Numbered from the stretch's first letter, positions 3,252 through 45,539 are shown. The stretch: DNA of 64,000 nucleotides from Thalia democratica (GCA_965202585.1 OZ241831.1:19530001-19594000); one strand, 5' to 3'. Program-made: numbers and translations. The notes: generated by a model not told the origin, from the sequence alone.

Positions 3252-4016
3252 ATTTTCTGATTTCGACAGTTTGCAATAAACTTTATATATACATATATAA
3301 TATTGTTAATTATCCTTTAGTTTAATAGTTATTAACAAGTAAATTCTAGTGGTTATTATTGAAGATTTTATGTTATTTAGGCTAATTTTTTTTTACTACG
3401 TTTGTTTAGAATAAGAATATTTTTTATACAATGCGGCCGGAAAGCAAGTTTGTCTAATAAAAAACAAAATGTAACAGATCCGGCCTACCTTTTGCTATGC
3501 TCCAGGTTTGTACGGACCAAAAATCAAAAGATCAAAAAAACATATATTAAAGCCCGCTTAGATCTCATGAGCGGTTTCTCGCGAATAAACATGCGATGAG
3601 TCGTATTAAGATTGAAACCGGTCGTAGATTGTCTCGAATACTGTTGTTGATGGTCGTGTGGTAAAGTCCATTATTTATTAATGATGGCGCAAAACATCTC
3701 AACTTAGTTGATAATGACCGTATTGAATATTGATATAATATACTCAGTATAATGTACTAAGATGGTTTTAAGAAAATAAATTTTCAGAATAGTATTAACT
3801 TAATTATACATATTTGACAAATCATGTCTCAAACTAAACTTTTATTAAATTTTAAATTGAAAAAAACAATTTATAGACATAAACTTTAACATTAAAAAAG
3901 ACATGTTTTTAGCCCTGTTATAGTAAATAAGTTGAATATAAAATCCAAAACTTTACCTTAGAGTAGAATTTCAAATGGCTTTAGCTTTAATTGGATAACA
4001 ACTAGGAAGCCACTTT

Positions 4017-5241
4017 GGTAATTACTTAGCATGATGTCGCACCAATATCAAACTGGAATTATATAATTCTCAATTTCTATTTTAATCATAAATTTAGGCT
4101 AAAATGCAATGTTTTTGCGTTATATGTTAAGTCTAATTTAATTGATACTATGTTTTGGTTATGGTTGACTTTAGGTGAGCACCAATATCAAGCTGAACTT
4201 GTAATACAATTGATTTCTTATTCAATCATAATTTTAGGCAAAAAATTATTTTTTTATAAATACATGAATAAAATTAAACTAAAATATCATAACTTATAAA
4301 CTTATATACTTAGATGATTTTAATTTTTAATATAAAAGTGATTATATCAATACAATAATTTATATTGATTATGATATTGTTAAATAAAATTTAATAAATA
4401 TTTTAGTTTATATTATGTTAATTTAGTTCTTTTTATGTATTTATATAGCTTGTTTAAAACAAAGTATTGTTTTTTTTTAGCCTAAAATTATGATTATAAA
4501 GACATCGAATGTATTATATTTTCAGCTTGATATTGGTGCTCACCCAGAGCTAACCAAAACCTATGTTTTAAAAATTTTTATATAAATGCATAAACAGTTA
4601 TTTACTTACTTAAAAGGTGATCAAGATAATAACTAAACAAGAGATTGTACTTGTATATCATATATTTTTATGCTTAACTCTAAAAACTTCTAATTATTTA
4701 AAGCTAAAATTAAAGATAGATTTTCAGATAATAAGTTTCAAAATATTTCATTAATTTCCACAGCTTTTAAACATACTTTTCCTAAAGTTTTCAAGTTAAG
4801 GACTGACGAGCTCTTCCAGCAAAACTTAGTTTGCTAAATAAACTTTTGAAAAAACAAAAAGTATTTACACAAAATACCAATTTACAAACATTAACTAATA
4901 AACTACAAGCAGCCCGTGATCTACTTGATCCAGTATCCGGGAGAATATTGCCTTTTTAGATCCAAAGGAACTTAGTTAAAAAAAAATTTGGACCTGTTAA
5001 ATAACAAGATAAGATTCTTAATTTAATCAACTAACTTTGATAATTACTAAACAAAAGTTTGGTGATGTGCTTGACAATAATTTATTGTGTATAACTCTAG
5101 TGACAAAAACATAAAGCTTGTAGAAGCCAATTTAAAATATTAAACAATTTTATTTTTAACCTAAAATTATGGCTAAAAAAGACATTGAACATTACATAGT
5201 TTCAGCTTGATATTGGTGCAACATCATGCTAGGTAATTACC
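4017..5241. mobile_element. Long-TIR MITE (GG termini, Merlin-like), subfamily A, carrying nested insertions
   Basis: Inverted ends GGTAATTACTTAGCATGATGTCGCACCAATATCAA / TTGATATTGGTGCAACATCATGCTAGGTAATTACC; both flanks contain CACTTT (degenerate TSD). Confidence 0.65.
4157..4561. mobile_element. Merlin-like MITE, subfamily B
   Basis: TIRs of roughly 100 bp starting GGTTATGGTT; exact 8-bp TSD TATGTTTT (4149-4156, 4562-4569). GG termini with 8-bp TSD and long TIRs fit Merlin. Confidence 0.75.
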
Positions 5242-6884
5242 TCACTTTCACCCTAATGTGTACACTTAAAATACTAATGGACTAAAAAAGTTTATCTACT
5301 GATTTACCATTTATAACAGCATCTTCTAGTATTAAATCCTTTTTTAATTTGTTAACTTGACCCAAATTAATAATTTGAAAACTATTTACTTTCACAAGAT
5401 TTTTTTGATTAAATTTTCAAGTTAGAAGCTAAGGTTTTTTTTTGCTAATGAGTTGTTAAGCTTATCTACTATTTTTATAAGTAATATGTTGTTTACTATT
5501 ATTTGTTATTTATTATATTCTATTTGAATAAGATTTAGTGTTAATGTTTTAAATTGTTTACGTTTTGTTTGTCTTGAGAATGAGTAGCAAGGATGTCCAA
5601 TAAGCTGTCAGGCAGCACAAAATGAGACAACACATCATGGATGCAACTTTTCCCCAGCCATATTCAATGGACGTTAAATTTTATCAGATAGTTAAAGAAA
5701 ATTTATTGAACAAGAAAGAACAAGCCCTCAAAAAGTATGGTTTAAGGATCAGGAGTACAAGAATATCTGGTTTTGCAATGTTGAAAAGCGTGTGCCCCGA
5801 TTTGTGTGCAAAACCGAATATCTTTTATTCCCACGGATACAGTTTAATGTCTTGTCCAGGATTTAAAGAAAATTTCATATACAAAACATTTATATACATG
5901 ATTGCAACTCACTATTTTTAAATAACTATATTTCTGATACAGACTAGAACAAAATGCTTTGAAAAACTAATATAAAAATTAAATAAATTTCGACCAATAA
6001 CATTTAACAGAACTAAAATAAAAATAAGGCCTATTTTAATTACTTAACTCAAAAAATTTATATTAATAAAATTTACTATACTTCTTAAGCAATTGTCTAT
6101 ACAAGAAAAACACTATTTTTTAAATCTATAGTATAAATATATATATTTACTACTTAAAATCCTTTTTGCAATAAAATCAGTAAAGTTTCTATTGATAGAT
6201 TATTAACATTTTCTTTAGAGTTAATGACAATTTATTCAGAAATTTATTGTTATGTTAATAAAATAATTCAACTTGAATGTTAGAATTTAGGGTTGCCTAA
6301 AATTCAGGCAGTTTGAAAAATGTTAAGAAAATTTTTAAATTTCAGGCTTACTTGTAAATTTTTGTAAAACTCATGCTAGTTTAAATTTTTTTGTTCTTTT
6401 ACTGTTTTTTATTACTTATATTTATCTGTTTTTCTTATAAATTGTGTTTTCTTAATAACATTAGACAATTTTAATATCTGGTTATTTAAGTATTCAACTT
6501 TTTCAACAGTAAGTTTGTTCTTTTTTTGATGTTTTCACTTTTGATTAAAGTACTCTTTCAAACTCAAGTGGGTTCAGGCTACTTTTTGATCAAACAGGCT
6601 GAATTTTTTGCTTTAAAAAAACAACCCTGGTGCATACTTCCAATGATTATCCCTTTGGAGACTCTTGTTAGTTAGAGAAGGTTGCTGCTAGATTTTTTCA
6701 AGTTTGTGTACACCTCTTCACCATTTAAATCAGCATTAAGCAATTTTTATTCTTTTTCACAGTTAGTAAAACAGTTTAAAAATTAAGTTTAAATTATGAA
6801 GTATGAATAAGTTCACATAAATACAAACTTTAGAGTTTAGCAAGTAAAACTTAAGTAAAGATTTTTTATTAATAAATTGTTAAT

Positions 6885-7900
6885 ATTTTTGCTCATTTAA
6901 TGCTATTTGCGTATTTAACTTAAGTCGTTCTTCCTCAATCAATACTGATTCCAGGCTGTAGAGTTCTCTTTGTTAACATCGTTTCAAAACTTTGAAGTTT
7001 TAAACTAAGTCAGAGTTTTAACAGCATGTGCAATTAAAAAGATAGTCAAATATTGTGCTGTTTTTATCTGTTCCACAGTGGTCTTTAATTTGTCAGAAGA
7101 CTTGTGATGTTTCTCCAATGTAGGAGATGCTCTGATCTGAAGAGCAGGTGTATTTATAAATTAAATTTGTGTCAAATACTTCCAAGCATTTACTTTTGTT
7201 GATGAAGTAGTCAGAAACTTTTTTGCTGATGTAGGTCGGTTTAATAACAATGTTGTGTTTATGAAATATGGATGCTATCCATTTTTGGAATCTTATTAAA
7301 CAACTACCAACGTAAACCATTGTGAAGTAAAAGCAGTTTTCAATGTCTGTTTTCTTTTTTCGTATTGATACTTTCATTTTGTTTAAATGATGAGTTGTCA
7401 ATTTTATGAATTTCTAGGAGATTGTTGATGTTGGACTCTGTAAGTTTTTTGGATACTGATTCTCAAGTAATAAGTTTTTAATTTTTGTGAGTTAAAAGAG
7501 GTGAATTTTGTTCAGCATATGTTTAAATAAAAGTTTATTAAAAACTGGTTGTGAACCACGTGGATAGATGTTGTGTTGAATTTTTAGGTTTACTGTGTTT
7601 TTAATATAATTTCTATAATAATAAATTACTTTGTTTTCTTTATAATCCATTAGGCTAATTTGCAATTTTTTGTGTTTACGGAATAATTTTTTTTCTCTAT
7701 TTCTTCAAAACGGTTTTGTGGAGAAATTTTTTTTCTAACTTTTTAAGATAATCCGACTTATTTAAGACAACAACTCCATTGCCTTTATCCATTTTACATT
7801 CAACTAACTGTTAATGAGTTTTTTTAGAGATCGCTAAGTGTTTTATGTGCTAAATAGTTTGGTCTGGCTTCACATTTAACTTAAATATTGTTTATTATTT
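6885..7900 (-). mobile_element. Penelope/Poseidon-type PLE remnant, internally deleted (RT core missing)
   Basis: Minus strand reads DKGNGVVVLNKSDYLKKLEK...IYPRGSQP, then jumps to KLKTYYLENQYPKNL...YFTMVYVG...KVSDYF...NLIYKYTCSSDQSISYIGETS...RIKDH...NFKVLKRC...LESVLIEEERLKLNTQ. Confidence 0.8.
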
Positions 7901-8781
7901 TAACAATATAACTACAAAAATGTAAACACAGGAATACCTTTCATCTATTTTAATGATGAGCTAAACTACAATTGATAACTGTAGCTTTGTCAGTGAACTT
8001 TATTCTTGAATATTTTGTTTAAATCTTCAAGCAATAAAGAAAAGTAACATGCAAAAACATTTAGGGCTAGTTGCAAAGACAAATAGTTTTGTCTAAGTAA
8101 ATTGAATAACAATAAATAGAAAAATAGCTTTTATCTAGCATTTACTAACCATATTAAATATTATTTACTGATCATTAAATAGTAAAAAAAAATAATATTA
8201 TAATTTACAAAAAAAAGTGTTAGTTTACGATTAAAAATTATAAATATGCACATTCATAATAAATAAATCAGATTATTAGAAGTTTAGTTATTACTTATAA
8301 TATTGGTATTTGTAGTAATGTTTTAAATTTTTGTCTTATTTTTATGTGAAGCTTATAACAAGATGAACTTTTTTCTAAATGTTTGTGGTTAGAAGGTTGT
8401 AATTTGTACACTAACATATTCTATGTATGTAAATTTGTAAAAAAACTTAAAAGAATCCTTAAAAGAATTCTTAAAAGAATCTTTAAAAAATCTAAAATAC
8501 TGTAAAATTCCACCTTGAACCTAAAAAATGTTTTTTTTAACTCTTTTATGAAAATATTACTACAAGTTCTAGTTGAATTAAATTAAAAAGTTAAAAGTAA
8601 AAATTAGGTCTATGTAGTTAATTATATCTCTATTTAAATTTTTAAGGTTGATTGTCCAATTATCATTCTCAACGCAGCTTTGTAAAACTCTTTGGTAAAA
8701 TTTTAGTATTACTTTTATGAATGTAACTTTCAGAACTTTTATAATTATACAAAGAATTAAATAAACTATCTTAGTTAAGAA

Positions 8782-11700
8782 ATGAACTTATCAGTTGATA
8801 GTTCTGATCATAAAGTTGTAACTGTGATGAATGATTCAACTACCATTTCAAGAACAATAAAAATAGAAAGTCCTAAAATTGATAGGAACAGTTATTATTC
8901 TAACAAAAGATATACAGTTAATACTGATGGTATACCTTTAAAGAGTAATAGAAAAATGTCTAACCTACCAAGTAGTTATCATTTAAATAAAAGAGGAGGT
9001 AGACTATCTTCTACTAAAAATTATATATCACAAGGCAATAACAAAAGCGCTTTACAAGGTGAGAGTATTAATCATATATCCTCAGAAAAAAATGACTTTA
9101 CCAAAGAACTTTCACCAAGCACTTACAATTATGACAAATGTTCAGCAAAAATAGATAATTTATATTCTTGTTCAAAACATGTTGACTTAAGTCCAGTATC
9201 ACCATATAGTAACTCAAAAGAAAACTCGGAAAAAAATTGGCAAGGAATCTCAAGATGTATGGATTCAAATGCTGAGTATCAATATCTTAAAAGTTGTTAT
9301 ACAGATGTATCAACTTTAAGAAAATACAGTTCAAGAAAAAGTAGTGAAAAACATAGAAGTTTTAGAAATAATTCACCACTTGTTTATGACAATAAAAGAA
9401 GACTACCTGAAAGGTGTGGTTTTGATGAACATAGAATGAATCCTACTTACAATAGAAAATACTGTTCAAATAGTGAAAATACCAGTACTAAATTTTCTCG
9501 CTCAAAAAGTTTTAAGAAAAGGTCACTAGAAAAGTTTAACTATTTTTATACAAGATCTGAAGAAAGAAACCCAATACCCCAGTCTAGTAGAAGACTACAC
9601 AAACCACATTCACCAAGGCCAAAAGGTTCTTATAAGAGGCACAGTCCGAAAATAGAGTACATAAGAGATACAAAATACTATAAACCTAATAAAACTTATG
9701 TAAAAGACACAGTGAAAAGCTTTAATAACGATGAACAAAGACAAATCAGGCAGGATTTTTTTATGTATAAAAAAGAGAGAAGTAAATATCAGCATTCAAA
9801 TTACTTTGAAAAAAATAAGTCAATGTCTCCAATTAATCTAGAAAAAAGACATAATAGTTCTAAAAATTTTGGTATAATAAACTTAGAAAGAACAGAACAC
9901 AGTATATACAGATCACCAAGTCCAAAATACTATAAAAATGCTTCTATAAATTTTAAGTATTTACCAAGTAGTTTGACAAATTATAGAAAAAGGTTATCAA
10001 ATCCTTGCTATTACAGAAAAAGTCCAGAATTTTCTAGTAAAAGGAATGTAATACTGAAAAACCAAGAGGATTCCTGCTTCAAACCAAAAAGATTTACTGC
10101 TAAACTTCAGGATACGGAAAGGTTTAATGTTACAACTTTGAGACTTAGTGGCAATGAAAATAAAACAGACGATGAATTAATGTATAATCATTGTAGCCTT
10201 AAAAATAGAGATCAGAAATTTGCCAAAAATTTATTATATCATAGAAATGAAACAGATGAGTTTTGTGCAAAGTATGGAGAACATTCTAACTGTACAGATG
10301 ATGTTAGAGTTCCAATTTCCTCTCAAAGTACCTTACAAAAAAATTCAAATGAGTTGATACCTAATCGTAAAAGTGAACCGTATTCAGTTCATACAGCTGA
10401 TTTTTATAGAAATGAAACACCTAAAAATAATTACAATTGCAATGCACGAAGCAAAACAATAGAAAGGCAGCCATCAATAGGTATGAAACGTAGTGCCAAC
10501 GAATTTAATACCGAGACAAAACTTAAAAAAAGAAAGATTGATGAAGAGTGTTCTGGTACAAAGTTACCTCTTGTGAATGATGAGGATGTTCAAACACAGT
10601 CAATTGATTCAAGTGACCAGTATCCTTTTGGTTTGTACCATTTGAAAATTTCCAAATTAGCTTCCGAAAGAGATTATAATACTGTCAAAAACTTTTTCCT
10701 TCGTTTTGGAAAAATATTAGCCTTTAAATATATGAAAGGAGATTGTTGTTACACAGCTTATGTGAGGTTTGAAAATGATAGTGTTGCTGATCAAATAGTT
10801 AATAAAGAAATAAAAAAATGTTTAGTTATTAAAGGTGTTGAGTTTTATCCTGAATCTACAAAAACTTACAGAGCTTTTAAAGAAAAACATGTTAACAAAA
10901 CTGGACTTAGCGTCGCAGAGACCTGTAGTCAAACTAGCAATAAAATAAAGTCTGAGGGTTTGATAACAAGTCAATGTAGAAAAACAAATATTGATGCTGC
11001 GGGTGATAGAACATCCTTTGGTGGAATAAGTTTTCGTCAGCTGGCTCCAATGATCCAAACAGGTCCATATATTGGTCAGTTCCATCTCTCAATTAGAAAC
11101 ATATTTGCAGGCAAGCCAAAACTTCAAGTGGACGTGACTGATTTTCTTAACAATTATGGTACACCATCTCACATTGACTTTAGAAACTTGAGAAGAAATG
11201 ATGGACTGAGACGAGATGTTGTAGACGCTTATGTAAAGTACAGCGATGATGCATCAGCAAGCAATTTACTGGATGAAGTTCAGGCTATCAACATTTATAA
11301 CACATGGTGTAATGTACGTCCTACTATGGAGTACACTGCATATAGAAATCGAGATAATACCAATAAGCTTAAGCTAGCTGACCCTGGCATACCTGTAAAT
11401 GCTCCAGTGTTCAAAGGTAAATGGCATCTCAGAACAGGTAAGTTTCTCATGAATGATGAAAGCTTTAAGCAAGCACTAAGACAGTTTTATCAACAGTTCG
11501 GCGCCATTTCAAGCTTTTCTGTTCAGCAAAGCAAACACAAAGGATATTTGTTAGAAAAAAGCAAGTATGACGCTTTTGTTCTTTTCAATGATAGTAATGT
11601 CCCAAAAAAAATTTTGGATTTAAAAATTGACTTTACTTACCAATGGAAACAAAAACACATAATTCCTAGCAAGGAGTTTAAATTTTATTTAAACAATATT

Positions 11701-12150
11701 AGAAGCATGTTTAGTAATCAATTTCCAACAACAGATGCTGACCAAAACACTTGGAATGAACAATCAGTTGCAACGTTGACAAAGTTGTGTTATTTGGATC
11801 CAACCGGTGTTGATACGTGCGGATACCGAGGAGAGTACCATATTAGCATTGAACCTTTCAACAAAATTTACCACGAGCAAGCAGGAGATTCTGTTCTAAC
11901 GTTTGTGCGCCAATTTGGAAGAGTAGCCAAAGTCCAGCTTCAGCCATTCTTTTCCCATCACTCGTTTGTCGGCAGCATAAAAGTTCAAAAGAATCCAACG
12001 TTTGCGCAGCTAAGGGTGAACGTCAGATTTACGAGCGACCAAAGTGCAGACAGCCTGCTTAAATCAAACATGAAGTTCTGTTACAAAGGAAGAAATATGT
12101 TGATTTCGGCTACTGATGATTACAATTCTTATTTTAAGAAGAATGGATAA
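8782..12150 (+). CDS. 1122-aa putative nuclear RNA-binding protein: Arg/Ser/Tyr-rich disordered N-terminus, NLS, four divergent RRM-like repeats
   Basis: 3.37-kb uninterrupted ORF in stop-rich AT DNA. RSPSP/RHSP/RS motifs; KLKKRKIDEE at ~10519. Four ~85-100 aa repeats start at 10621, 11068, 11410 and 11824, each with F...FG-[KATR]-[IV] and an RNP1-like (AY/AF/VN)V-x-[FY] strand. AATAAA overlaps the stop. Confidence 0.85.
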   Translation: MNLSVDSSDHKVVTVMNDSTTISRTIKIESPKIDRNSYYSNKRYTVNTDGIPLKSNRKMSNLPSSYHLNKRGGRLSSTKNYISQGNNKSALQGESINHISSEKNDFTKELSPSTYNYDKCSAKIDNLYSCSKHVDLSPVSPYSNSKENSEKNWQGISRCMDSNAEYQYLKSCYTDVSTLRKYSSRKSSEKHRSFRNNSPLVYDNKRRLPERCGFDEHRMNPTYNRKYCSNSENTSTKFSRSKSFKKRSLEKFNYFYTRSEERNPIPQSSRRLHKPHSPRPKGSYKRHSPKIEYIRDTKYYKPNKTYVKDTVKSFNNDEQRQIRQDFFMYKKERSKYQHSNYFEKNKSMSPINLEKRHNSSKNFGIINLERTEHSIYRSPSPKYYKNASINFKYLPSSLTNYRKRLSNPCYYRKSPEFSSKRNVILKNQEDSCFKPKRFTAKLQDTERFNVTTLRLSGNENKTDDELMYNHCSLKNRDQKFAKNLLYHRNETDEFCAKYGEHSNCTDDVRVPISSQSTLQKNSNELIPNRKSEPYSVHTADFYRNETPKNNYNCNARSKTIERQPSIGMKRSANEFNTETKLKKRKIDEECSGTKLPLVNDEDVQTQSIDSSDQYPFGLYHLKISKLASERDYNTVKNFFLRFGKILAFKYMKGDCCYTAYVRFENDSVADQIVNKEIKKCLVIKGVEFYPESTKTYRAFKEKHVNKTGLSVAETCSQTSNKIKSEGLITSQCRKTNIDAAGDRTSFGGISFRQLAPMIQTGPYIGQFHLSIRNIFAGKPKLQVDVTDFLNNYGTPSHIDFRNLRRNDGLRRDVVDAYVKYSDDASASNLLDEVQAINIYNTWCNVRPTMEYTAYRNRDNTNKLKLADPGIPVNAPVFKGKWHLRTGKFLMNDESFKQALRQFYQQFGAISSFSVQQSKHKGYLLEKSKYDAFVLFNDSNVPKKILDLKIDFTYQWKQKHIIPSKEFKFYLNNIRSMFSNQFPTTDADQNTWNEQSVATLTKLCYLDPTGVDTCGYRGEYHISIEPFNKIYHEQAGDSVLTFVRQFGRVAKVQLQPFFSHHSFVGSIKVQKNPTFAQLRVNVRFTSDQSADSLLKSNMKFCYKGRNMLISATDDYNSYFKKNG

Positions 12151-13768
12151 ATAAATGTTAACTATTAAAAGCTTTGCACACCGAATGCTATAAAACTCTT
12201 AGAATTGCTTTATTTTCTAAATAAGATATACGTCTAAGACTTACTTTGAGCATGATTTATAATAATTGTTCAGCATTCTTTTTTTTTTTAATTTGACTGC
12301 ATTGTTTTTACTCTTTGTTTTCGTTAAATTAAGTTTTTTAAAGCTTTTTTTAGTTTTAATACTTCCGAAAGAACTAATAGAATTAATAACAAATTTTGTG
12401 AATATATTTCTACGTATTTTCAGAAGGAGGGATGCCAAAGCAAAGTTAAATAAAAAATACATTAGTAATTTGTAATTCCACGAAGATATTCGATACTTAA
12501 CTTATTCTATCAATACTAGTGTTGTATCAATGGAATCTTTCTAAATTAATTTTTAAGAGAAATTTCTGCTTATAAATATTAAATACTTAATGTAGAAAGC
12601 TGTTATCAATTAAGAAATTATATAACAGTGATATATGAATATAGTAAATTATAAAAACTCGCTTACTAATTAAATCATGCTGTTTTAAAACAATTAGTTT
12701 TTTTTCTGCATTTAAGTTTACACCAATATGGTTTACTATATTTTCTAACTCTTTATAATTCTACGTATAAGAATTTTTTTTAGTAATTAACAACAGTTCT
12801 TCCAAAACTTCATACCGATATTAGATAAGTTAATAGAAAATAGTTGAATTTATATACATACTTCTTAATGTTTCCGGTACGTATAGAGACATGTAAAGCA
12901 TCATTTAAATTGCTTTTCAAGTTTTTTGAACATCATAAATTCAGTAAAATAAATCATTTATAAACTAGGGTATAAGCTTTCTGAAGCACAGTTAACAAAA
13001 AAAAACAAATAGTATACTTCAGTTTTTACATTCTGTACAACATTTACCTACTTTGTTCATTTTATAAAAATTTTTGATTTCAGTATTAATGACTTTTAGG
13101 GTTTATTAGATTACTTTTTTTTTAGTACTGACAACAATATACATAGAATTTATAAACTTTTATTTGTTATAATTTGAGGGTTTAAAAGATTTGAAATTTC
13201 TTACAGTAGGAAATAACAAAAGTACATGCGAATGAAACAAATGTTTCAAAGTGCTTATCGATGTCATGGCAATTGAGTACTGTAGCGCAGTGGTCGTCAA
13301 AAAATGAATAGATTTTTTTTATATATCGAAAAATAAGTAAGGTGCTTAAAAGGTTTTTAGACAACACCCTTTTGTTTATTTCTATTAAAAAAAGATAATT
13401 TTAATATAAAATAATAGTTCTTAAACTGCTATTTATATACCAAGGCACTCGAAACATAAAAAATAATATTCTTTATTAATAGTTATATATTTTAATAGTT
13501 TAGTGTTCACAGAACTTTTTCGTCAGTAATTTAGTGTGCAAAGCTTTGAAAAGGTTTAAGACCACTGCTGAAGCGTATAAACTTTTGTTTTAAATGAAAC
13601 TTTACGCTTAATTAGTAAAAGCAATTCGGTTAAACAAGAATAGTGTTAGAATAAACCAATAAAAAGTGCATTTGCTTTACCAAAACCGAAATTTCCACGG
13701 AAAAAGGAAGCATTCAAAAAATAAAGTATGAACAAAAATGTGTGTATTTTTAAATGTAAACTATAAGT

Positions 13769-16700
13769 CAGGGGTCGGCAGGCAGTTGGTGGTCGCGGGC
13801 CAAATTTCAAGTTTCTAAAGTCTTCGCGGGCCACAGTTTTAGTTTTAGTGACATTTGATTATTTTTTTGGTTTTAGTTTTAGACACACTAGAGGAAAATT
13901 TTACTTCTATTCACCTTATTACTTTAAATTACTTTTAACCATACATAGAATGCCTACTTAAATTAATATTTTTATTAGAATAGAACTTACATTGACTAAT
14001 ATACTTAAGTGTTAATAAACTATGTACTTACATAAGCACTTAATAAGTTAAACTTAATACTTTTGTAATTTTACTTACAACCTAGCTCTCTATAAAAACC
14101 TAACTTAAAAGACAATTTATGGGTTACTTTTATACATTGTTATATTGTCAACCCTTTTTTAATACTTATAAGAAAATTTACTACAAAAAAAGTTTTTGCG
14201 TGTTAAATAATTTACACTCATTAAAAAATTTAGTAATTAGCTAACTTAATAAAATTAATACCTGTTTGTATTCCAGAAAGCTAAAACAAATTCTTTAACA
14301 TAATTAGTTTTCGAATACTTTAATAAAATATCTTATTAGTAATTAGTCTTTTACATGGCTGCCACTTAAAAAGCAAAAATGTCTGAGTTGTATCAAACCA
14401 GTCTAAGTTTATTAAAAATTGAAAAAGCTAATAAATAGTTGTTAATCAAGCTTTCATACCTAGTTAAAATATCATCATTATCAAAAAGTATACAAAGTGT
14501 AAGAAAACAGGAAAAAATTACAAATAGTAAATTACACTACAGTCATAAAAACTAAAGAAATCGTCCATTTTCTCAGAATAGTTTTTATGACTGTAGTGTA
14601 GTTTACTAATAACTTCGCTAATGGCTCAATAAACTTTTATACTTTTGTTAAATTTGTTTAAGAAACTTAATTGTCCATTCCAGCTGACTTATATTTTTTT
14701 GGCATGTAATTTATTTACTGTTAATAACTTTCGTTATTTCTTTATGTTGTGAACTTTATTTTAACTGGGTAGCTTCACAAAAATGCTATTTTAAAAGCTT
14801 GAAAACTCAGGTGTGTATAAAACTTTTATTCAAACACTTTAAAGAAATCGTCCATTTTCTCAGAATAAAGTGTTTGATTTAAAAGTTTTACACACACCTG
14901 AGTTTTCAAACTTTTTAAATAGCATTTTTGTGTAGCTACCCAGTTAAAATAAAGTTCACAACATAAAGAAATAACGAAAGTTATTAACAGTAAATAAACT
15001 ATATGCCAAAAAAAATATAAGTCAGCTGGAATGGACAATTAAGTTTCTTAAAAAATTAACAAAAGTATAAAACTTTATTGAGTCTTTAGCGTAGTAGAAA
15101 AAAATATTTTTTATTAAGCGTTATAGCAATTCTTTATCTGTAATAAGAATATTGCATTTAAAAATAGTAATTGTAAAACATAAGACGAGCTACAAGAATA
15201 AATAACGTTAGCTAGGAGTTATTGCAAGAAACGATAAAAAAACAAACCACCAAAGTCAGTTCCAACAAAGCACATGATTATCTTCAGTAACTACAGAATG
15301 ATCAAAAAAAATTGTTAAGGCAAGTTATAAAGTAGCATAATTTATTACTTAAAATGTGATACCGTTTATAATTGAAAACTGTTATAAAGAACTTATGTTG
15401 GCGATAATGAAAAACTTTTGTTTATTTCTTCAATGACAACAAGAAGTCGTGTTTAGAAAATGCATTAAGATTATAAAGTTGCATAAATAAAATTAGGACT
15501 TTAATCAATCTTTTAACATGAGAGCACTGAATGAAAAACATTGCTCATCTGAAAATTTTTATTAGAGATGTTTTTACTAGCTTTGAAATTTTAGTAGAAT
15601 TTCTTGGTTAAGTTCCAACGCGAAGCACAACAACCGGTGAAATTTTACAAGTAAAGGTGCAATGAACCAATAAAAAGTTTTTGCAAGTACAATTCCTTCT
15701 TTTATTTTTAGTATAAAGTTTAATTAAAGTTAAAAAAATGTCTTAAAAAATATATCAATATTGAAAAATACTGTTAAGCTAATTTAATATATTTTTAAAT
15801 AAAAAAAATACTTATTTGATAAATTTTTTGTTATAAATCGAAATTTAATTATGTACATGTAAAAATTGTTTGAAATCCAAGGTTTTTTCAAAAATTCTCA
15901 AATTCAAGTTTTTTTCCAGAGTTTTTAAGCATAAATTTTTTAATTCAAAGCTTTTCCGGGATTTATATTTTTTGGCAACACTGTTTGTTAACACTTAAAT
16001 GTACACAATAATATAAATTATATTTTTAATTATATCAGTTGCAACACTTAAAATTTAACATAAATTATAACTCAAACTAACACTGTGGATTGAGCAAAAC
16101 ATATATCATAAGTTTAATCTGCCGCACTTTCTAGCAAAAAAGCCTGCCTGAGTTAACAAAAACATTTCTGATATTTTTATATACAAAAAGTAATTCTAGC
16201 CAAAAACTTAAAAAATTACTTAGTTGGCCTGAGATTTGAAGTCTTCAAATAGTGATAGTCTGAGTGTGTGGCAATGTGTTGTTGTTTATTTGCTTGAATT
16301 TGAATTATTTTGATTAACAATGTACAAACTTAATGAATTTACCATTCCAAAATGTAGTTTATATTAAATAGGTAGCTCCTAAAAACAGCAGTTGTCTGTA
16401 TTGATATGCAAGGCATAAAAATTAACTTCGTTTGACAAAAACAATGTTTGAAAATTGAAAATGTATACCTAACAAAAACTATATTAATTTATCTCATTTA
16501 TAATATTTTATATGTGTCTGTACAAATTTAGATATCACATATAGAAACAACAATGTTAGAAAATTATGAATAAACTAAACTTAAATTAACTAAAGTATTA
16601 AATAAAAAGTGGTTTAAAATATGAGCATCTTTTAAAGTTGGTGTGCATAGAAATTAATTTAAATGCAAAGAAAACTTCTAGAAAATTTACAAAAATGAAA

Positions 16701-17313
16701 ATAAACCTAATTTTTTATTACGATGTTATTTTAAATGTTTTTACAATGTTTATTTAAAATATAACATTTACAAATAAAAAATCTATAAAAGAAACTTAGG
16801 TATAAAAAATATTGATAAAGAATATATAAGCTATAAAGAAATGACTCTTTAGTTAATTACTATGCATTACTTTTGTAGAAAATGGAAAACATTTGCATTT
16901 AGCTTATTTAATAAATAGGTATTATATAACTAACATATTAAATCCAAGCACTCTTTTTTTAGATAATTACTTGCTGTTGTAAAAAAGAAGCTATTATAAA
17001 TGTGAGAAAAATATCCTGTTAGAATGCTAATCTGTCTTTTTCACATTTTTAAACTATAGCAGTAATTTCTTCTAACTATTTTAAAATGTTATACAGAGAT
17101 TTAAAATCAAAACTAATCAAATTAAATCGAACTACCGAAAAAAATTTAATTTGAAGTATATTTTTGCTCAGCGGGCCACATTTACATGCTCGCGGGCCAC
17201 AAAATTTTCTTTCGCGGGCCGCATTCCATTCAAAAAAATAACATGCTCGCGGGCCGCAGTTTTACCCTTCGCGGGCCGCAATTGGCCCGCGGGCCGCAGT
17301 TTGCCGACCCCTG
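13769..17313. mobile_element. 3.5-kb non-autonomous hAT (Buster/SPIN-like) element
   Basis: TIRs CAGGGGTCGGCA / TGCCGACCCCTG; exact TSD CTATAAGT (13761-13768, 17314-17321); GCGGGCC subterminal arrays; no transposase ORF. Confidence 0.9.
14612..15094. repeat. Long inverted repeat (~230-bp arms, 24-nt spacer)
   Basis: 14612-14841 is the reverse complement of 14866-15094 with scattered mismatches; spacer AAGAAATCGTCCATTTTCTCAGAA. Confidence 0.9.
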
Positions 17314-18509
17314 CTATAAGTATATATTTTATCTAGTGTTATTCGATCCATAATTTTGGGATTTTAATATGTTTTTCAAATTAAGATCCGCATACTATTT
17401 CAAAATAAGATCCGGATAAATTTTTTAAATCGAGGTTCAGCCGGATACTGGATCTAAAACTTTAAAAACGCAGTTAAGTAAAAAGTTTATTTCAAACGAA
17501 TAGTTTTGATAAAAATCAATATTTTAAAAGTTTTTATATAATTGTTAATACTACGCATTTAAAAAAGTGTTTTAATTTTCAAAAATAAATTTTTATTGGT
17601 TCTTTACTGCAGTATACTTTTTATTAAACTCTGAGTGTAAACTAGTTAAAACTGAAAAGGAAAGTAAACTTAAACGTTAGTCTGAACTGAAAAACGCTGA
17701 TTCATCAAGCTTTTTTTAACTTTTATTTATAACTTTCACCCTAGCCCACCTTACCCAAACATATTTAAAAAAATTCTTAAATTGTTTTAATAATTAAAGT
17801 TGTAAAAAAGAACATGAAAAAAGCTTACTGAATCAGATTTTTTCACCTCAAACTAACCATTAAGTTTACGAGCCAAAAAAAATAAATAATTGACTTTTTT
17901 ATAAAACTTATTTTTTGTTTACTATAATATTTTAAATTGGCTTTTACAAGCTTGATGTTTTTTCAACTAATGGTAATATACGATAAACTATTTTCAAGCA
18001 ATTCACAGAACTTTTGTTTAGTAATTATCAAAGTTAGTTGCTTACATTAAGAATCTTAACTTGTTTTTAAACAGGTTCGGATATTTTTTTCAAACTAAGA
18101 TCCGTTCGGATCTAAAAAGGCAATATCCTCCCGGATAATGGATCAAGTAGATCACGAGCTGCTTGTAGTTTGTTAGTTAATGTTTGTAAATTGGTACTTT
18201 GTGTAAATACTTTTTGTTTTTTTAATAGTTTATTTAGAAAACTAAGTTTTGCTTAACTTAAAAGCTTTAGAAAAAGTATGTTTAAAAGCTATGGAAATTG
18301 ATTTATGAATTAAAATATTCAAAATATGTATATATATACGTATAAAACAAATAAAAATTAACAAAGTGAAGGCTAACAACTTTTCTAGTAATAATTTTGA
18401 AAAAAGTTTATTTCAAAAACAAAAGCCAAAAAAATATTTAATATTTTTTCGTTAAACATGCATATCTACGGTTTTATTTGACTTAGTGGCTTAATCTATT
18501 TGAATAAGA

Positions 18510-18575
18510 TTTTATTCAACTGATGATCTCGTTTGACTAGTTTCAAGCGAGTGAAACAATGTATTGTTAATAAAA
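18510..18575 (+). ncRNA. Type I hammerhead ribozyme (PLE/retrozyme-type), no adjacent ORF
   Basis: TTTTATT CAA CTGATGA T CTCGTTTGA-loop-TCAAGCGAG T GAAAC AAT GTA TTG TT AATAAAA. Full catalytic core, 9-bp stem II, GUA cleavage triplet, bulged stem I. Confidence 0.8.
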
Positions 18576-19985
18576 TTCATAATTGATCATTCTCCTTAAA
18601 TTTAAGTTGAGAACTTTGATTGTCATCTTTAAAGTAAAAAGTTCACGTTTAAACATTCTAATACACTTAGTCTGTTCTATAAGTATTAATTATGCAACGG
18701 AAAACTTAAAAAGTAACCTAAAAATCAAACGTCTTTGCAAACTTAATTCTTAATTAAATTAAGGGAAATTTCTAAATAACTAAAAATTGTAAAATAAAAA
18801 CCTAGTTTTCTTTAAATTGTAGCAAGCAGTATGAGCAAATACTGTTTATTTTATAACCAAACAGTGTTTAGCCAATAGTATTTCACTGCTAAAGAAGTAT
18901 AATGTAAAAAGTTATGATCATACGATCTTTTTGTATTATAACATAGCTTTTAAAGTTATGAACTTAAATTAATTTATTAATGAAAATTTTGATTTTCAAA
19001 GGTAAAGAAATGATAATTTGTTGAGCTTGGTTAAAAGACATTAAAAAAAAATTATTGTAATAAAAAATTGTCAGTTTAGTTAAATAAAGAAATAGTACTG
19101 TTAAATTTCTTATTATTATTTAAATTGTTACTTTGATTAAATTTTTGTTTTTTTTACAGGTTAAGAAATCTGTGATAACTAGTACAAAAATAAGGTAACG
19201 TTCAAAGTAATGTACTTGTTATTTATATAAATGGAATCTAAATCGTCATGTAACCGTATTTAAAAACCATAGTTAAAATTGAACAAAAAAATAACTTAAT
19301 AGAGGCTATAAAATAAATTAATTTTAAATGGTAGCAGTTGTTCAACAGAAGCTCTAATTATCACAGAAAATTTTTTGTTTTATACTACTTTTCTTCTTTA
19401 TCAGGGCTTAAAAAGATCTTTTTTAAGATTTTTTTTTAATGATGTCTAATTAATGCTACTATTAACGTCATTTTAACGTTGATTGAAAAATTCACTATGG
19501 TAATAACAACGTTAAGTTTTACTATTATAATAGCATTGTCTATTTAACGACAAAAAAATCGCTCAAAAAATTTAATCCTAGGACCTGTTGCACAAAGAAC
19601 TTTTCGGTTATTGAGTCGCACACATCTTGTCAAGGGCGCTATTCCAGGACACCACATAAGAATTTATTTACTTTATATTTTTTAATGAACAGTAATTAAA
19701 TCATTAAAAATAAGAAACTTATTATATAAATTTAATCAACAAATAACTTTTTCTTTTTGTTTATTAAACTTATTGAGTATACTCAGTTTACTATATTTAA
19801 TTGATTTAAATGTCGTACTGTTAATATATAAAGCAAATGAATTTTTGATAAAGTAAAACTTAGGTTAATTGTAACATAATAATGTTCTGGTATATTTGAG
19901 CCCTGGGTTAAAATAAATAAAAAGTATCAAAGAAAAAACTTTCTGTGAAAAGTTTTAAAAATTTTCTATATGAGCATAGTCCAGT

Positions 19986-44180: not shown

Positions 44181-45539
44181 ATGGAAGCTACCACACCACG
44201 GTTTCTTGTGCAATTACAAGTGTTGTTGTCAGAAAATCCAGATTATGTAGGGTGGATGGAGAATGGAAAAACTTTTACAATAGTAGACCAAGAAGGATTT
44301 GCTAAAAATGTCCTGAGCCGTTATTTTAAACACAAACAAATGGCAAGTTTTGTCCGCCAACTCAACATGTACGGATTTAAAAAAGTGGTAGGTGTTCACA
44401 ACAATGATTTAGTTTCATTCTATCATCCTTTTTTCGAAAGAGATAACTACAAGTTAATGGAAAAAATAAAAAGAAAGACTCCTGTAAATGATAAAATTAG
44501 CAATGAAGTAGTTAACTCCTTAACACATCAAGTAAAAAATTTGCAACTATCAAACGCACAATTTGTAGAAGAAGTTCAGCATTATAGACAGGAGAATGAA
44601 GCTTTAAAAAAGCAAGTCAAAATCCATCAAGAAAAAATTAACCAACATGAAGCATACTTGCAAAAGATGCTAAACTTATTGGTTTATTTTAAAAATGTTT
44701 ACCCTAAATTGGTGAGAACAGAAGACTTGACCACTAATCAACCACTAATGATATCAAATAATGAAAGTCACCAGAATAAAGTGCTATCTTCAAAACTTGT
44801 TTCTCCTGGAAGTAGTGAAAAATTTCAAAATTTTTCATTAGGTTCTAGTTTGGTTTCTCCATTACAAATTGACAGAAGCTTTCATACTGATTTAGATAAT
44901 GTCAAAAATTCTTTGCAGCAAGACAGTAATGCATTGAATTCTTTGATTAGTTTTGACAGTTCTAGTTTAGAAAAAAATAATAACCTTCTTGCTCTATCTA
45001 CACAGCCACATAAGTTTGAGAATGGAATGTTAAATCCAACAAAACGAAAAAGACCTAAACTTACACCAGTTCGTTATTTAAAGCCAGACCCAAACAGAAA
45101 AGTTGACAGAATATTAACTTTTCCATCTACACAGACTGATTATGATGATGAAGAAAAACAAGAAAAAACCTATAAAGATGATCCATTTGTAGTTAGCTCT
45201 GTTAGTAGATTACCGAGTTTAGATTCTTTTAATGATGAGATTATTAACTCAGCTACAAATTTCAACGACAATACTGCTTACCTTGACGAGTTTAATTATA
45301 ATTCTATTAAAACTACCAATTCTGATCATCATAGTTTAGGTATGGATACTAATATATCATTGAGTAATACTGATGATGATAAGAATAAAATTATTGATTA
45401 TAATACAGAAAATTTCCCATTGAATGAATTTTCGCTAAATTTTAATGAAAATTATGGAGAGGATGCAATAAACTCGGCATTTGATCAGCTTATACAACCT
45501 TCTACTAGCTCTACTCAACCTTCGCATAACAGCAAATAA
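44181..45539 (+). CDS. HSF: Heat shock transcription factor (intronless, divergent), 452 aa
   Basis: DNA-binding domain signature FAKNVLSRYFKHKQMASFVRQLNMYGFKKV...F.HPFF.R...L...IKRK; HR-A/B heptads (aa ~113-170); HR-C-like LDNVKNSLQQDSNALNSL; NLS KRKRPK; acidic C-terminus; AATAAA just after the stop. Confidence 0.93.
   Translation: MEATTPRFLVQLQVLLSENPDYVGWMENGKTFTIVDQEGFAKNVLSRYFKHKQMASFVRQLNMYGFKKVVGVHNNDLVSFYHPFFERDNYKLMEKIKRKTPVNDKISNEVVNSLTHQVKNLQLSNAQFVEEVQHYRQENEALKKQVKIHQEKINQHEAYLQKMLNLLVYFKNVYPKLVRTEDLTTNQPLMISNNESHQNKVLSSKLVSPGSSEKFQNFSLGSSLVSPLQIDRSFHTDLDNVKNSLQQDSNALNSLISFDSSSLEKNNNLLALSTQPHKFENGMLNPTKRKRPKLTPVRYLKPDPNRKVDRILTFPSTQTDYDDEEKQEKTYKDDPFVVSSVSRLPSLDSFNDEIINSATNFNDNTAYLDEFNYNSIKTTNSDHHSLGMDTNISLSNTDDDKNKIIDYNTENFPLNEFSLNFNENYGEDAINSAFDQLIQPSTSSTQPSHNSK

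Follow-up and report, generated by a model that had tools for sequence, protein, structure and literature searches.

Nucleolin and Drosophila Modulo have a long charged, disordered N-terminus with an NLS, followed by four RRMs. SR proteins consist of one or more N-terminal RRMs, followed at the C-terminus by an RS domain that spans 50 aa or more and has an RS content above 40%. In the xRRMs of La and LARP7 a helix (alpha3) lies across the beta-sheet and beta2 carries a conserved [YW]-x-[DQ]. The coding region of RBM12 and RBM12B is a single exon.

The window analysed here, a stretch of 64,000 nucleotides from Thalia democratica, contains a gene whose product resembles several known proteins in part. 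Its order of regions is that of nucleolin and Modulo, but it has neither acidic runs nor a C-terminal GAR/RGG tail. Like U2AF65 and RBM39 it carries a basic Ser/Arg-containing region before the RRMs; those proteins, however, have three RRMs whereas the window protein has four, and its RS and SR dipeptides are present only at the level of chance. The RRMs of the La/LARP7 type likewise lack the canonical RNP aromatics and possess an added C-terminal helix, but in the window protein neither a La motif nor any other LARP context is present. RBM12 and RBM12B (language-model score 0.85, below the lead level of 0.9) contain several spaced RRMs in one long coding exon, as is the case here, but the RRMs of RBM12 are of the hnRNP F/H type (RRM_11) and showed no sequence match to the window repeats. 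Canonical RRMs (PF00076; U1A RRM1, TDP-43 RRM1, hnRNP A1 RRM2) share the fold, the order of elements and profile-level similarity with the repeats described below, which differ from them by the loss of the RNP2 aromatic, by a special lead-in and by a helix motif after beta4.

A transcribed, intronless host gene

The gene and its transcript comprise the following features.

8727-8733, plus strand: ctttcag, resembling a 3' splice acceptor, as read from the sequence
8732-12598, plus strand: unspliced mRNA with a 5' UTR of ~45-50 nt, the CDS and a 3' UTR of ~450 nt, placed by contig ends and the poly(A) junction
8782-12150, plus strand: CDS without intron, ATG to stop, 1122 codons plus stop
10188-10189, plus strand: site of a 52-codon (156 nt) in-frame deletion relative to two relatives, in the disordered half
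12578-12583, plus strand: ATTAAA, a putative variant poly(A) signal ~15-20 nt upstream of the cleavage site, from comparison of the sequence with the poly(A) junction of contig L003

The reading frame of 1122 aa proposed by the first-pass annotation was found exactly as described. The longest other ORF within 3500-19500 has 102 aa. Since about 0.086 stops per codon are to be expected in the AT-rich DNA of this region (25-35% GC), an open frame of 1122 codons does not arise by chance (probability ~1e-44, by our own estimate).

The transcript evidence consists of contigs from a sister taxon and of X5, a run for which the type of library is not recorded. Transcript contig L003 of the sister taxon ends in a poly(A) run just past the position that matches 12598 of the window. 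It aligned with the genomic contig L001 in one block of 4018 nt with 99.55% identity and is thus unspliced, in agreement with the claim of a single-exon gene. Transcript contigs start at 8732 (X5) and 8739 (X1 and L003). When metatranscriptome contigs X1 and X2 were compared with positions 7600-13500, their matches to the gene were confined to 8739-12500; one short piece of X1 matched upstream of the gene, at 7600-7684. Because the mRNA ends were drawn from the sister taxon or from contigs, they are accurate to ~10 nt. The 5' ends coincide with the acceptor-like ctttcag, which may serve as a site for trans-splicing or for an intron in the 5' UTR; letters of a spliced leader or an upstream exon were not seen on the transcript contigs.

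The comparison covered three close relatives, all of them known from plankton data of Tara Oceans. Two of these are full-length, with intact ORFs of 1177 and 1173 aa, and in the relative with 67% identity the frame is open over all 620 codons present on contig L004. Counted together with the window gene, each of the four taxa has an open frame, over the full length (1122-1177 codons) in three of them and over 620 codons in the fourth. All indels among the relatives are in frame, and it is by these that the N-terminal half varies in length. One of them is the deletion at 10188-10189: contigs X5 and X6 of organism A span this position without the extra segment, and a contig of X2 has the segment as a loose end. 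The comparison of substitution rates suggested by the first-pass annotation gave a dN/dS of 0.19 for the four repeats together (0.32, 0.086, 0.32 and 0.12 for repeats 1 to 4). In the comparison with the 67% relative dS was saturated, while dN was just 0.09-0.19 in repeats 2-4. For the N-terminal half dN/dS was 0.60 against the relative P0002 and 1.29 against P0001, the latter value being based on few changes (44 non-synonymous, 8 synonymous). Residues 761-800, in the region of repeat 2, are completely identical to those of P0002. Purifying selection acts on the four repeats, and the N-terminal half is fast-evolving.

It might be argued from the N-terminal value of 1.29 that the ORF is transcribed but neutral or decaying, and without function. 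This is barely credible with a frame that is still open in the fourth taxon at synonymous saturation, with dN/dS of 0.09-0.32 in the repeats and with indels that are without exception in frame. The ORF itself, the poly(A)+ contig colinear with genomic DNA, the dN/dS values and the in-frame indels together establish that 8782-12150 is a real, transcribed, intronless host gene under selection.

The surroundings of the gene raise the question of a mobile element, either as a retroelement ORF1-type RRM protein or as cargo of a large transposon. The gene has no intron, retroelements are abundant in the window, and a pair of inverted repeats of ~390 bp, ~13 kb apart, flanks the gene. However, this pair is unique, with no second full-length copy anywhere in the genome, and the gene itself is present in one copy in 802 Mb. 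The same locus with the same flanks was found in the sister taxon (~92-93% identity in non-coding DNA), and no reverse transcriptase or transposase ORF occurs within 3500-19500. With the repeats under purifying selection as well, an origin from a mobile element is highly improbable, and the TE-ORF1 reading in particular was rejected on copy number, the conserved locus and the lack of an RT or transposase ORF. A search of the whole window against Rfam gave no match.

Four repeats of an atypical RRM subfamily

The C-terminal half of the protein (~510 aa, pI 9.3) holds four repeats.

10621-10881, plus strand: RRM repeat 1, aa 614-700; RNP1-like CYTAYVRF, helix motif STKTYRAF
11068-11349, plus strand: RRM repeat 2, aa 763-856; the most conserved repeat, with an Arg-rich beta2-beta3 loop RNLRRNDGLRRD
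11410-11691, plus strand: RRM repeat 3, aa 877-970; RNP1-like KYDAFVLF, helix motif PSKEFKFY
11824-12135, plus strand: RRM repeat 4, aa 1015-1118; insertion of ~10 aa in the beta2-beta3 loop, no RNP aromatics (QLRVNVRF)

Pfam RRM_1 matched repeat 1 with an E value of 2e-4 and 21.6 bits, its cutoff being 20.7. Each taken alone, repeats 2-4 fell below Pfam significance, and a single-sequence search of the PDB with the whole protein was blank. A family profile built from 38 family repeats (alignment A4) matched TDP-43, U1A and hnRNP A1 in the PDB with E values of 2e-8 to 2e-7. RRM_1 also recognised three stretches of the relative P0003 (E 1.2e-6) and the paralogue (E 2.8e-13). The family HMM scored repeats 1, 3 and 4 at 75, 87.9 and 78.5 bits, respectively, although its alignment itself includes these repeats.

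Structure prediction, which the first-pass annotation had proposed as a check, gave the same answer. AlphaFold2 folded repeat 2 with a pLDDT of 86.3 and a pTM of 0.79 as b-a-b-b-a-b-b plus a C-terminal helix a3 (E13-19, H25-34, E39-46, E57-64, H67-76, E79-82/E85-91, H93-104), in keeping with the beta-alpha-beta-beta-alpha-beta order of the RRM, a fold of about 80-90 residues. In fold searches with this model all PDB matches identifiable by title were RRM domains or RRM-containing complexes, and the matches in AlphaFold DB and the atlas were RRM proteins; the top structural cluster of the atlas was RBM39-like (TM 0.64) but tied with others. A model of the 523-aa repeat half, based on an alignment of four sequences, had a pLDDT of 37, so that only the order of its elements is usable; this order was that of an RRM for repeats 1, 3 and 4. 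The match of RRM_1 to repeat 1, the profile matches (E ~2e-8), the model of repeat 2 and the fold matches, exclusively to RRMs, bear out the earlier suggestion of RRM-like repeats with a subfamily of their own: all four have the RRM fold and belong to an atypical subfamily.

The motifs on which that suggestion was based are all present in the protein. The repeats open with YPFGLYHL (aa 614), YIGQFHL (aa 763), FKGKWHL (aa 877) and YRGEYHI (aa 1015), and their closing motifs lie at aa 690, 847, 962 and 1110. The opening pattern [YF]-x-G-x-[YFW]-H-[LI] holds in its core, since G-x-[YFW]-H-[LI] is common to the lead-in before beta1 of all four repeats, but needs correction for repeat 1, where the G is preceded by one additional residue. 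The helix after beta4 carries [ST]-x-x-[YF]-x-x-[YF] in each repeat. The protein ends with YNSYFKKNG, four residues past the helix motif of repeat 4.

The first-pass annotation had considered RNP2 and RNP1 not to be recognisable. This was too strong, as the repeats can be aligned at the profile level with the motifs of U1A, TDP-43 and hnRNP A1, though most of the stacking aromatics are lost. Compared with the consensus sequences [RK]-G-[FY]-[GA]-[FY]-[ILV]-x-[FY] for RNP1 and [ILV]-[FY]-[ILV]-x-N-L for RNP2, position 2 of RNP2 is K, S, R and S in repeats 1 to 4, and thus the aromatic is absent throughout. At position 3 of RNP1 it is replaced in all four repeats (T, D, D, R), and at position 5 (Y, Y, F, N) it is left in repeats 1-3 only. 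None of the four repeats has the canonical RNP1 and RNP2 with three exposed aromatics. Retained are an RNP1-like core A-[YF]-V-x-F on beta3 and a conserved G before beta2 (alignment A4). Many accepted RRMs also lack RNP aromatics, which counts against the term canonical RRM and not against the RRM fold.

Could the repeats then be pseudo-RRMs that bind proteins instead of RNA? In such a case a3, a helix carrying two aromatics at a spacing of three residues, would lie over the beta-sheet, the domains would be occluded or similar to xRRMs or UHMs, and the protein would act as a protein-protein scaffold. The loss of the RNP2 aromatic from all four repeats, the residues T, D, D and R at RNP1 position 3 and the confident prediction of the extra C-terminal helix in repeat 2 all point this way, as does a match of repeat 1 to PF08777 (RRM_3), the La-type atypical RRM with such a helix. 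This match is sub-threshold (19 bits for RRM_3 in the Pfam scan, 19-21 bits overall, against a cutoff of 22.9), with a3 predicted to be present. The fold matches, too, include UHMs (PUF60, SPF45), SF3b14/p14 and the RRM dimer of PID-3 and TOFU-6. However, these tie with ordinary RNA-binding RRMs (Foldseek TM ~0.6; flat VIA Z scores from 9.8 to 8.4). UHMs have an R-x-F after alpha2 and an acidic alpha1, whereas inspection of alignment A4 by eye revealed no R-x-F in the stretch from alpha2 to beta4 of repeats 1-4, and the domains and their loops are basic, not acidic. The RNP1 position-5 aromatic, moreover, is retained in repeats 1-3. We regard protein-binding pseudo-RRMs as rather unlikely, with an appreciable chance left to them. 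In other RRMs an acidic residue at RNP1 position 3, as in repeats 2 and 3 (D), goes with protein-binding or occluded domains.

The basic N-terminal half

Two features were mapped upstream of the repeats.

8782-10617, plus strand: basic low-complexity region, aa 1-612, S/K/N/R/Y-rich, pI 9.7
10486-10536, plus strand: bipartite-NLS-like motif KR-x10-KLKKRK, aa 569-585, with KKRK at aa 582

A Pfam scan of the N-terminal region found no domain at threshold, and the region is probably disordered. Its first 600 aa contain 13.8% S, 11.3% K, 10.3% N, 7.8% R and 6.5% Y, and the charge count is 65 for D+E versus 115 for K+R. The earlier description as Ser/Arg/Lys/Tyr-rich low-complexity sequence therefore stands, with the addition that the region is also rich in Asn (10.3%) and that it does not constitute an RS domain.

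The term SR-like, on the other hand, has to be given up. In the N-terminal 600 aa we counted 13 RS and SR dipeptides, where 13.0 are expected from composition, with a maximum of five per 50-aa window; an RS domain was rejected on this count. The low-complexity half moreover precedes the RRMs, which is the reverse of the order in SR proteins, so that the protein departs from them in both RS enrichment and domain order.

The annotated NLS corresponds to KKRK at aa 582, which lies within the bipartite-like motif. We presume a nuclear localisation function for KR-x10-KLKKRK from the classical bipartite NLS consensus. The motif is kept in the relatives with 97% and 90% identity (P0001 and P0002) but only in part, and not intact, in the 67% relative.

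A restricted gene family and its possible role

The genome contains three paralogues of the gene: C1 with seven RRMs, C8 with a disordered half and four RRMs, and C10, an ORF of 118 codons with one repeat. In reciprocal best matches with C1, repeat 3 corresponded to its repeat 6 (42.7 bits) and repeat 4 to its repeat 7. As the last two repeats are colinear between the paralogues, their ancestor already had several RRMs, and the family grew by duplication of this multi-RRM ancestor.

Beyond this genome the family seems to be confined to the closest relatives of the animal, as far as can be judged from sequence searches. When the repeat half and paralogue C1 served as queries in word-indexed searches, only relatives at 67-97% identity were returned. 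An exhaustive single-sequence phmmer search with the repeat half against 1.84 billion representatives gave two clusters, both of close relatives. A profile built from the repeats was run to find short relatives and gave 212 candidates, none of them significant. A degenerate-pattern scan (alignment A3) of JGI metagenome contigs produced 137 pattern matches, none of which was confirmed. Overall, searches over billions of proteins returned nothing past the three close marine relatives. Language-model neighbours were generic RRM clusters only, with scores of up to 0.87, below the lead level of 0.9, and a search of the literature on salp genomes and RRMs yielded nothing on this multi-RRM family. 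The proposal of a lineage-specific protein is upheld, as the word-indexed, phmmer and repeat-profile searches gave no full-length orthology to a known family.

The same data bear on the relationship to nucleolin and Modulo, whose order of a long charged region, an NLS and four RRMs might suggest that the gene is an extremely diverged orthologue of such a disordered-plus-four-RRM protein. This is very unlikely. Besides lacking acidic stretches and a Gly/Arg-rich tail and stopping almost directly after repeat 4, the protein has only close relatives in the exhaustive search. No nucleolin RRM was among the best 60 PDB matches of the family profile, and the existence of paralogues with seven, four and one repeats of the same special type indicates a private family.

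What, then, does the protein do? We lean, by a little, towards the view that the lineage-restricted multi-RRM protein encoded by this intronless, expressed gene is nuclear and acts as a multivalent RNA-binding protein or RNP scaffold; as to its role, a nuclear, multivalent RNA-binding or RNP-scaffold function is the most likely one. RNA binding is favoured by the basic pI of the C-terminal half, by the aromatics at RNP1 position 5 of repeats 1-3 and by the conserved loop of repeat 2, and is opposed by the lack of two of the three stacking aromatics in repeats 1-3 and of all three in repeat 4. The incomplete NLS-like motif of the 67% relative speaks against a nuclear role. According to the reading we favour, the nuclear protein would bind RNA multivalently via non-canonical RRM surfaces, where the missing stacking residues may be replaced by the aromatic/His lead-in and by basic loops, among them the Arg-rich one of repeat 2. 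The N-terminal half, basic and disordered, might contribute unspecific RNA affinity, self-association or, given its 11 SP dipeptides, phospho-regulation. On this view the protein would serve to scaffold or package RNPs and would not be a sequence-specific splicing factor of the SR type.

A bolder and unlikely extension is that the lineage possesses a private toolkit of intronless multi-RRM proteins, including this family with one, four, four and seven repeats of an RRM subtype without the stacking aromatics but with a newly acquired, conserved aromatic helix, in which this gene would provide a germline or early-embryo factor for RNP packaging or silencing that employs a new, loop- and helix-based mode of RNA recognition.

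The RRM is a very well-known domain class. The subtype found here can be described by the signature G-x-aromatic-H-[LI] ... A-[YF]-V-x-F ... [ST]-x-x-[YF]-x-x-[YF], and it is under-called by annotation pipelines because standard domain scans mostly miss this signature. Should RNA binding take place without the usual aromatics, the repeats would represent one more natural case of non-canonical RRM recognition; otherwise they would form a tandem array of protein-binding pseudo-RRMs. With this gene, a poorly annotated animal lineage gains an orphan gene family that is expressed and well supported.

An expressed and intronless gene

The gene occupies a single open reading frame, exactly where the first-pass annotation had placed it:

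8782-12150, plus strand: ORF from ATG to stop, 1122 codons

It is the sole long frame between 3500 and 19500, where the runner-up has 102 codons. The G+C content of the window is 22-35% except in a single retroelement-rich bin (43.5%), so chance stop codons are frequent; by our own arithmetic from base composition, the chance probability of an open frame of 1122 codons is about 1e-44.

Transcription, a point the annotation had left to be checked, is evident from a poly(A)-ended contig and from metatranscriptome pieces. L003 (JGI sample 3300019144), the coding contig for the relative P0001, carries a poly(A) run right behind the equivalent of window position 12598, with ATTAAA 15-20 nt upstream of the poly(A) start. 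It aligns with L001, a genomic metagenome contig of the same sister taxon, in a single 4018-nt block with 99.55% identity. The mRNA is therefore unspliced and the gene single-exon, as had been proposed. Contigs of public sequencing runs were also placed on window positions 7600-13500. In the metatranscriptome runs X1 and X2 the pieces of the gene are confined to 8739-12500, the exception being one short X1 piece at 7600-7684. X5, a small run from the same organism with library type unrecorded, has one contig of 3572 nt spanning 8732-12300, a second at 12279-12690 and an isolated, unrelated one of 189 nt upstream of the gene (7923-8111). The deep run X6 covers the whole interval, as expected of DNA. 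Transcript contigs all have their 5' ends at 8732-8739, on an acceptor-like ctttcag (8727-8733); judged from its sequence, this may be a trans-splice acceptor or the acceptor of an intron in the 5' UTR.

Selection, length changes and neighbouring features

The protein has three relatives, each of them from the plankton data of Tara Oceans:

P0001: 97% identity to the window protein, 1177 aa
P0002: 90% identity, 1173 aa
P0003: 67% identity, sequence ends with its contig

Nei-Gojobori dN/dS against P0002 is 0.19 for the four repeats of the C-terminal half pooled (0.32, 0.086, 0.32 and 0.12 for repeats 1-4) and 0.60 for the N-terminal 600 codons. Against P0003 synonymous sites are saturated, yet dN is just 0.09-0.19 in repeats 2-4. 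Beside these values the notion of an ORF without function is poorly supported and scarcely credible. In the N-terminal half dN/dS against P0001 is 1.29, but the changes (44 non-synonymous, 8 synonymous) are too few for positive selection to be claimed.

Length differences among the relatives (3, 4, 7 and 52 codons) are all in frame and confined to the N-terminal half, bar a one-residue difference at the extreme C-terminus of P0002. The 52-codon segment is carried by the sister taxon and absent at 10188/10189 from this genome and from the contigs of X5 and X6. Within the disordered half, an X6 contig is 6 nt shorter at 10429-10434, which is an in-frame length polymorphism; X6 is labelled as coming from the same organism. 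Between this genome and the sister taxon the coding sequence shows a synonymous divergence of only 0.024-0.033, whereas identity in the non-coding flanks is 92-93%. The contrast points either to constraint on synonymous sites of the AT-rich gene or to faster change in the flanks.

Several features lie around the gene. On either side of it, about 13 kb apart, lie the two arms (4750-5142 and 17925-18302) of an inverted-repeat pair, each some 390 bp long and 84-94% alike; the sole full-length match of each arm in the 802-Mb genome is its partner, remaining matches being partial. Both arms also occur at the two ends of L001, so the pair is older than the split. It may have arisen by an inverted duplication long ago, or be what is left of the ends of a large element. 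L001 and L002, both from the sister taxon, lack about 3.5 kb (13769-17313) and have 13768 next to 17314. This stretch contains a foldback (14694-15014; 135-nt arms, 96% complementary, 51 nt apart) and is probably a transposon insertion. Further away, an uninterrupted 452-codon ORF with an HSF-type DNA-binding domain (44181-45539; PF00447, E 2.3e-26) resembles a further host gene, again apparently without introns.

Four atypical RRM folds behind a basic low-complexity half

All motifs quoted in the first-pass annotation were found in the protein: repeat openings at aa 614, 763, 877 and 1015, closings at 690, 847, 962 and 1110, and KKRK at 582. The opening pattern [YF]-x-G-x-[YFW]-H-[LI] needs amendment, because repeat 1 has one residue extra; the core G-x-[YFW]-H-[LI] is shared by all four.

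That the repeats are RRM-like is borne out, although Pfam RRM_1 matches only repeat 1 of the window protein, barely past threshold (21.6 versus 20.7 bits). The same model matches three stretches of P0003 (E 1.2e-6) and a paralogue (E 2.8e-13). A profile of 38 repeats from the window protein, its relatives and its paralogues has solved RRMs as top matches: TDP-43 (2.1e-8), U1A (2.3e-8) and hnRNP A1 (1.6e-7). With this alignment AlphaFold2 models repeat 2 as an RRM (mean pLDDT 86.3, pTM 0.79), in the order strand-helix-strand-strand-helix-strand hairpin, with an extra C-terminal helix whose beginning is formed by the closing motifs (PESTKTY and its counterparts). In searches with Foldseek (PDB and Swiss-Prot models), VIA (an independent method; 48,161 chains) and the atlas, the identifiable matches are all RRM proteins or RRM-containing complexes. 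TM is about 0.6 and Z declines only from 9.8 to 8.4, so no RRM subfamily stands out.

The RNP positions, read from an alignment to U1A, are atypical. Going from repeat 1 to repeat 4, the usual aromatic at position 2 of RNP2 gives way to K, S, R and S; in RNP1, position 3 reads T, D, D and R, and position 5 reads Y, Y, F and N. Thus one of three stacking aromatics is kept in repeats 1-3 and none in repeat 4. The main alternative is that these are protein-binding pseudo-RRMs whose sheet is covered by the extra helix. We consider it unlikely, though to be taken seriously: the missing aromatics and the helix would suit it, while against it stand the basic character of the repeat half (pI 9.3) and a conserved Arg-rich loop between beta2 and beta3 of repeat 2.

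The N-terminal half (S 13.8%, K 11.3%, N 10.3%, R 7.8%, Y 6.5%; pI 9.7) contains no Pfam domain and is probably disordered. RS and SR dipeptides occur in it 13 times, and its composition alone predicts 13.0; it is therefore no RS domain, and the description of the protein as SR-like has to be dropped. A bipartite-NLS-like KR-x10-KLKKRK at aa 569-585 is kept in P0001 and P0002 and partial in P0003. The protein combines a basic low-complexity half with four atypical RRM folds. On balance it is probably a nuclear protein that binds RNA multivalently or serves as an RNP scaffold, through non-canonical RRM surfaces.

A private gene family

The gene is single copy in the 802-Mb genome (the window being C7:19530001-19594000), and an origin from a mobile element is poorly supported and highly improbable. 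The genome also holds repeats of the same type elsewhere:

G000:C1:49136436-49139636 (L008:6437-9637): C1 paralogue, 1066-codon single ORF, seven repeats of this RRM subtype, N-terminal KKRR
L009:4859-7732, minus strand: C8 paralogue, 957-codon single ORF, first half N/Q-rich and of low complexity (about 480 aa), then four repeats
L010:4112-4468, minus strand: C10 ORF, 118 codons, single repeat of the same type

The C8 paralogue has the layout of the window gene. Its repeats and that of C10, left out of the first HMM, still score E 1e-6 to 7e-15 against it. Window repeats 3 and 4 are reciprocal best matches of C1 repeats 6 and 7, respectively, so several repeats were already present in the ancestor of the arrays.

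The searches brought up no full-length orthology to a known family. Queried with exhaustive phmmer over 1.84 billion representatives, the repeat half returned just two clusters, both close relatives; at this database size single-sequence E-values do not reach even the paralogues. Nothing further came from word-indexed searches, from searching with a profile of the repeats or from scanning metagenomes for the pattern. The relatives of the C1 paralogue are likewise only close marine ones, three in number (97, 86 and 70% identity). An exhaustive profile search could extend the reach. A diverged nucleolin-type orthologue is likewise poorly supported and very unlikely. What the annotation observed is confirmed, and its interpretation is partly supported; roles in splicing, the germline, TE silencing or condensates are candidates. 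The window gene is expressed, selected and intronless and belongs to a private family, in which a very well-known domain class appears in a new variant restricted to a narrow lineage.
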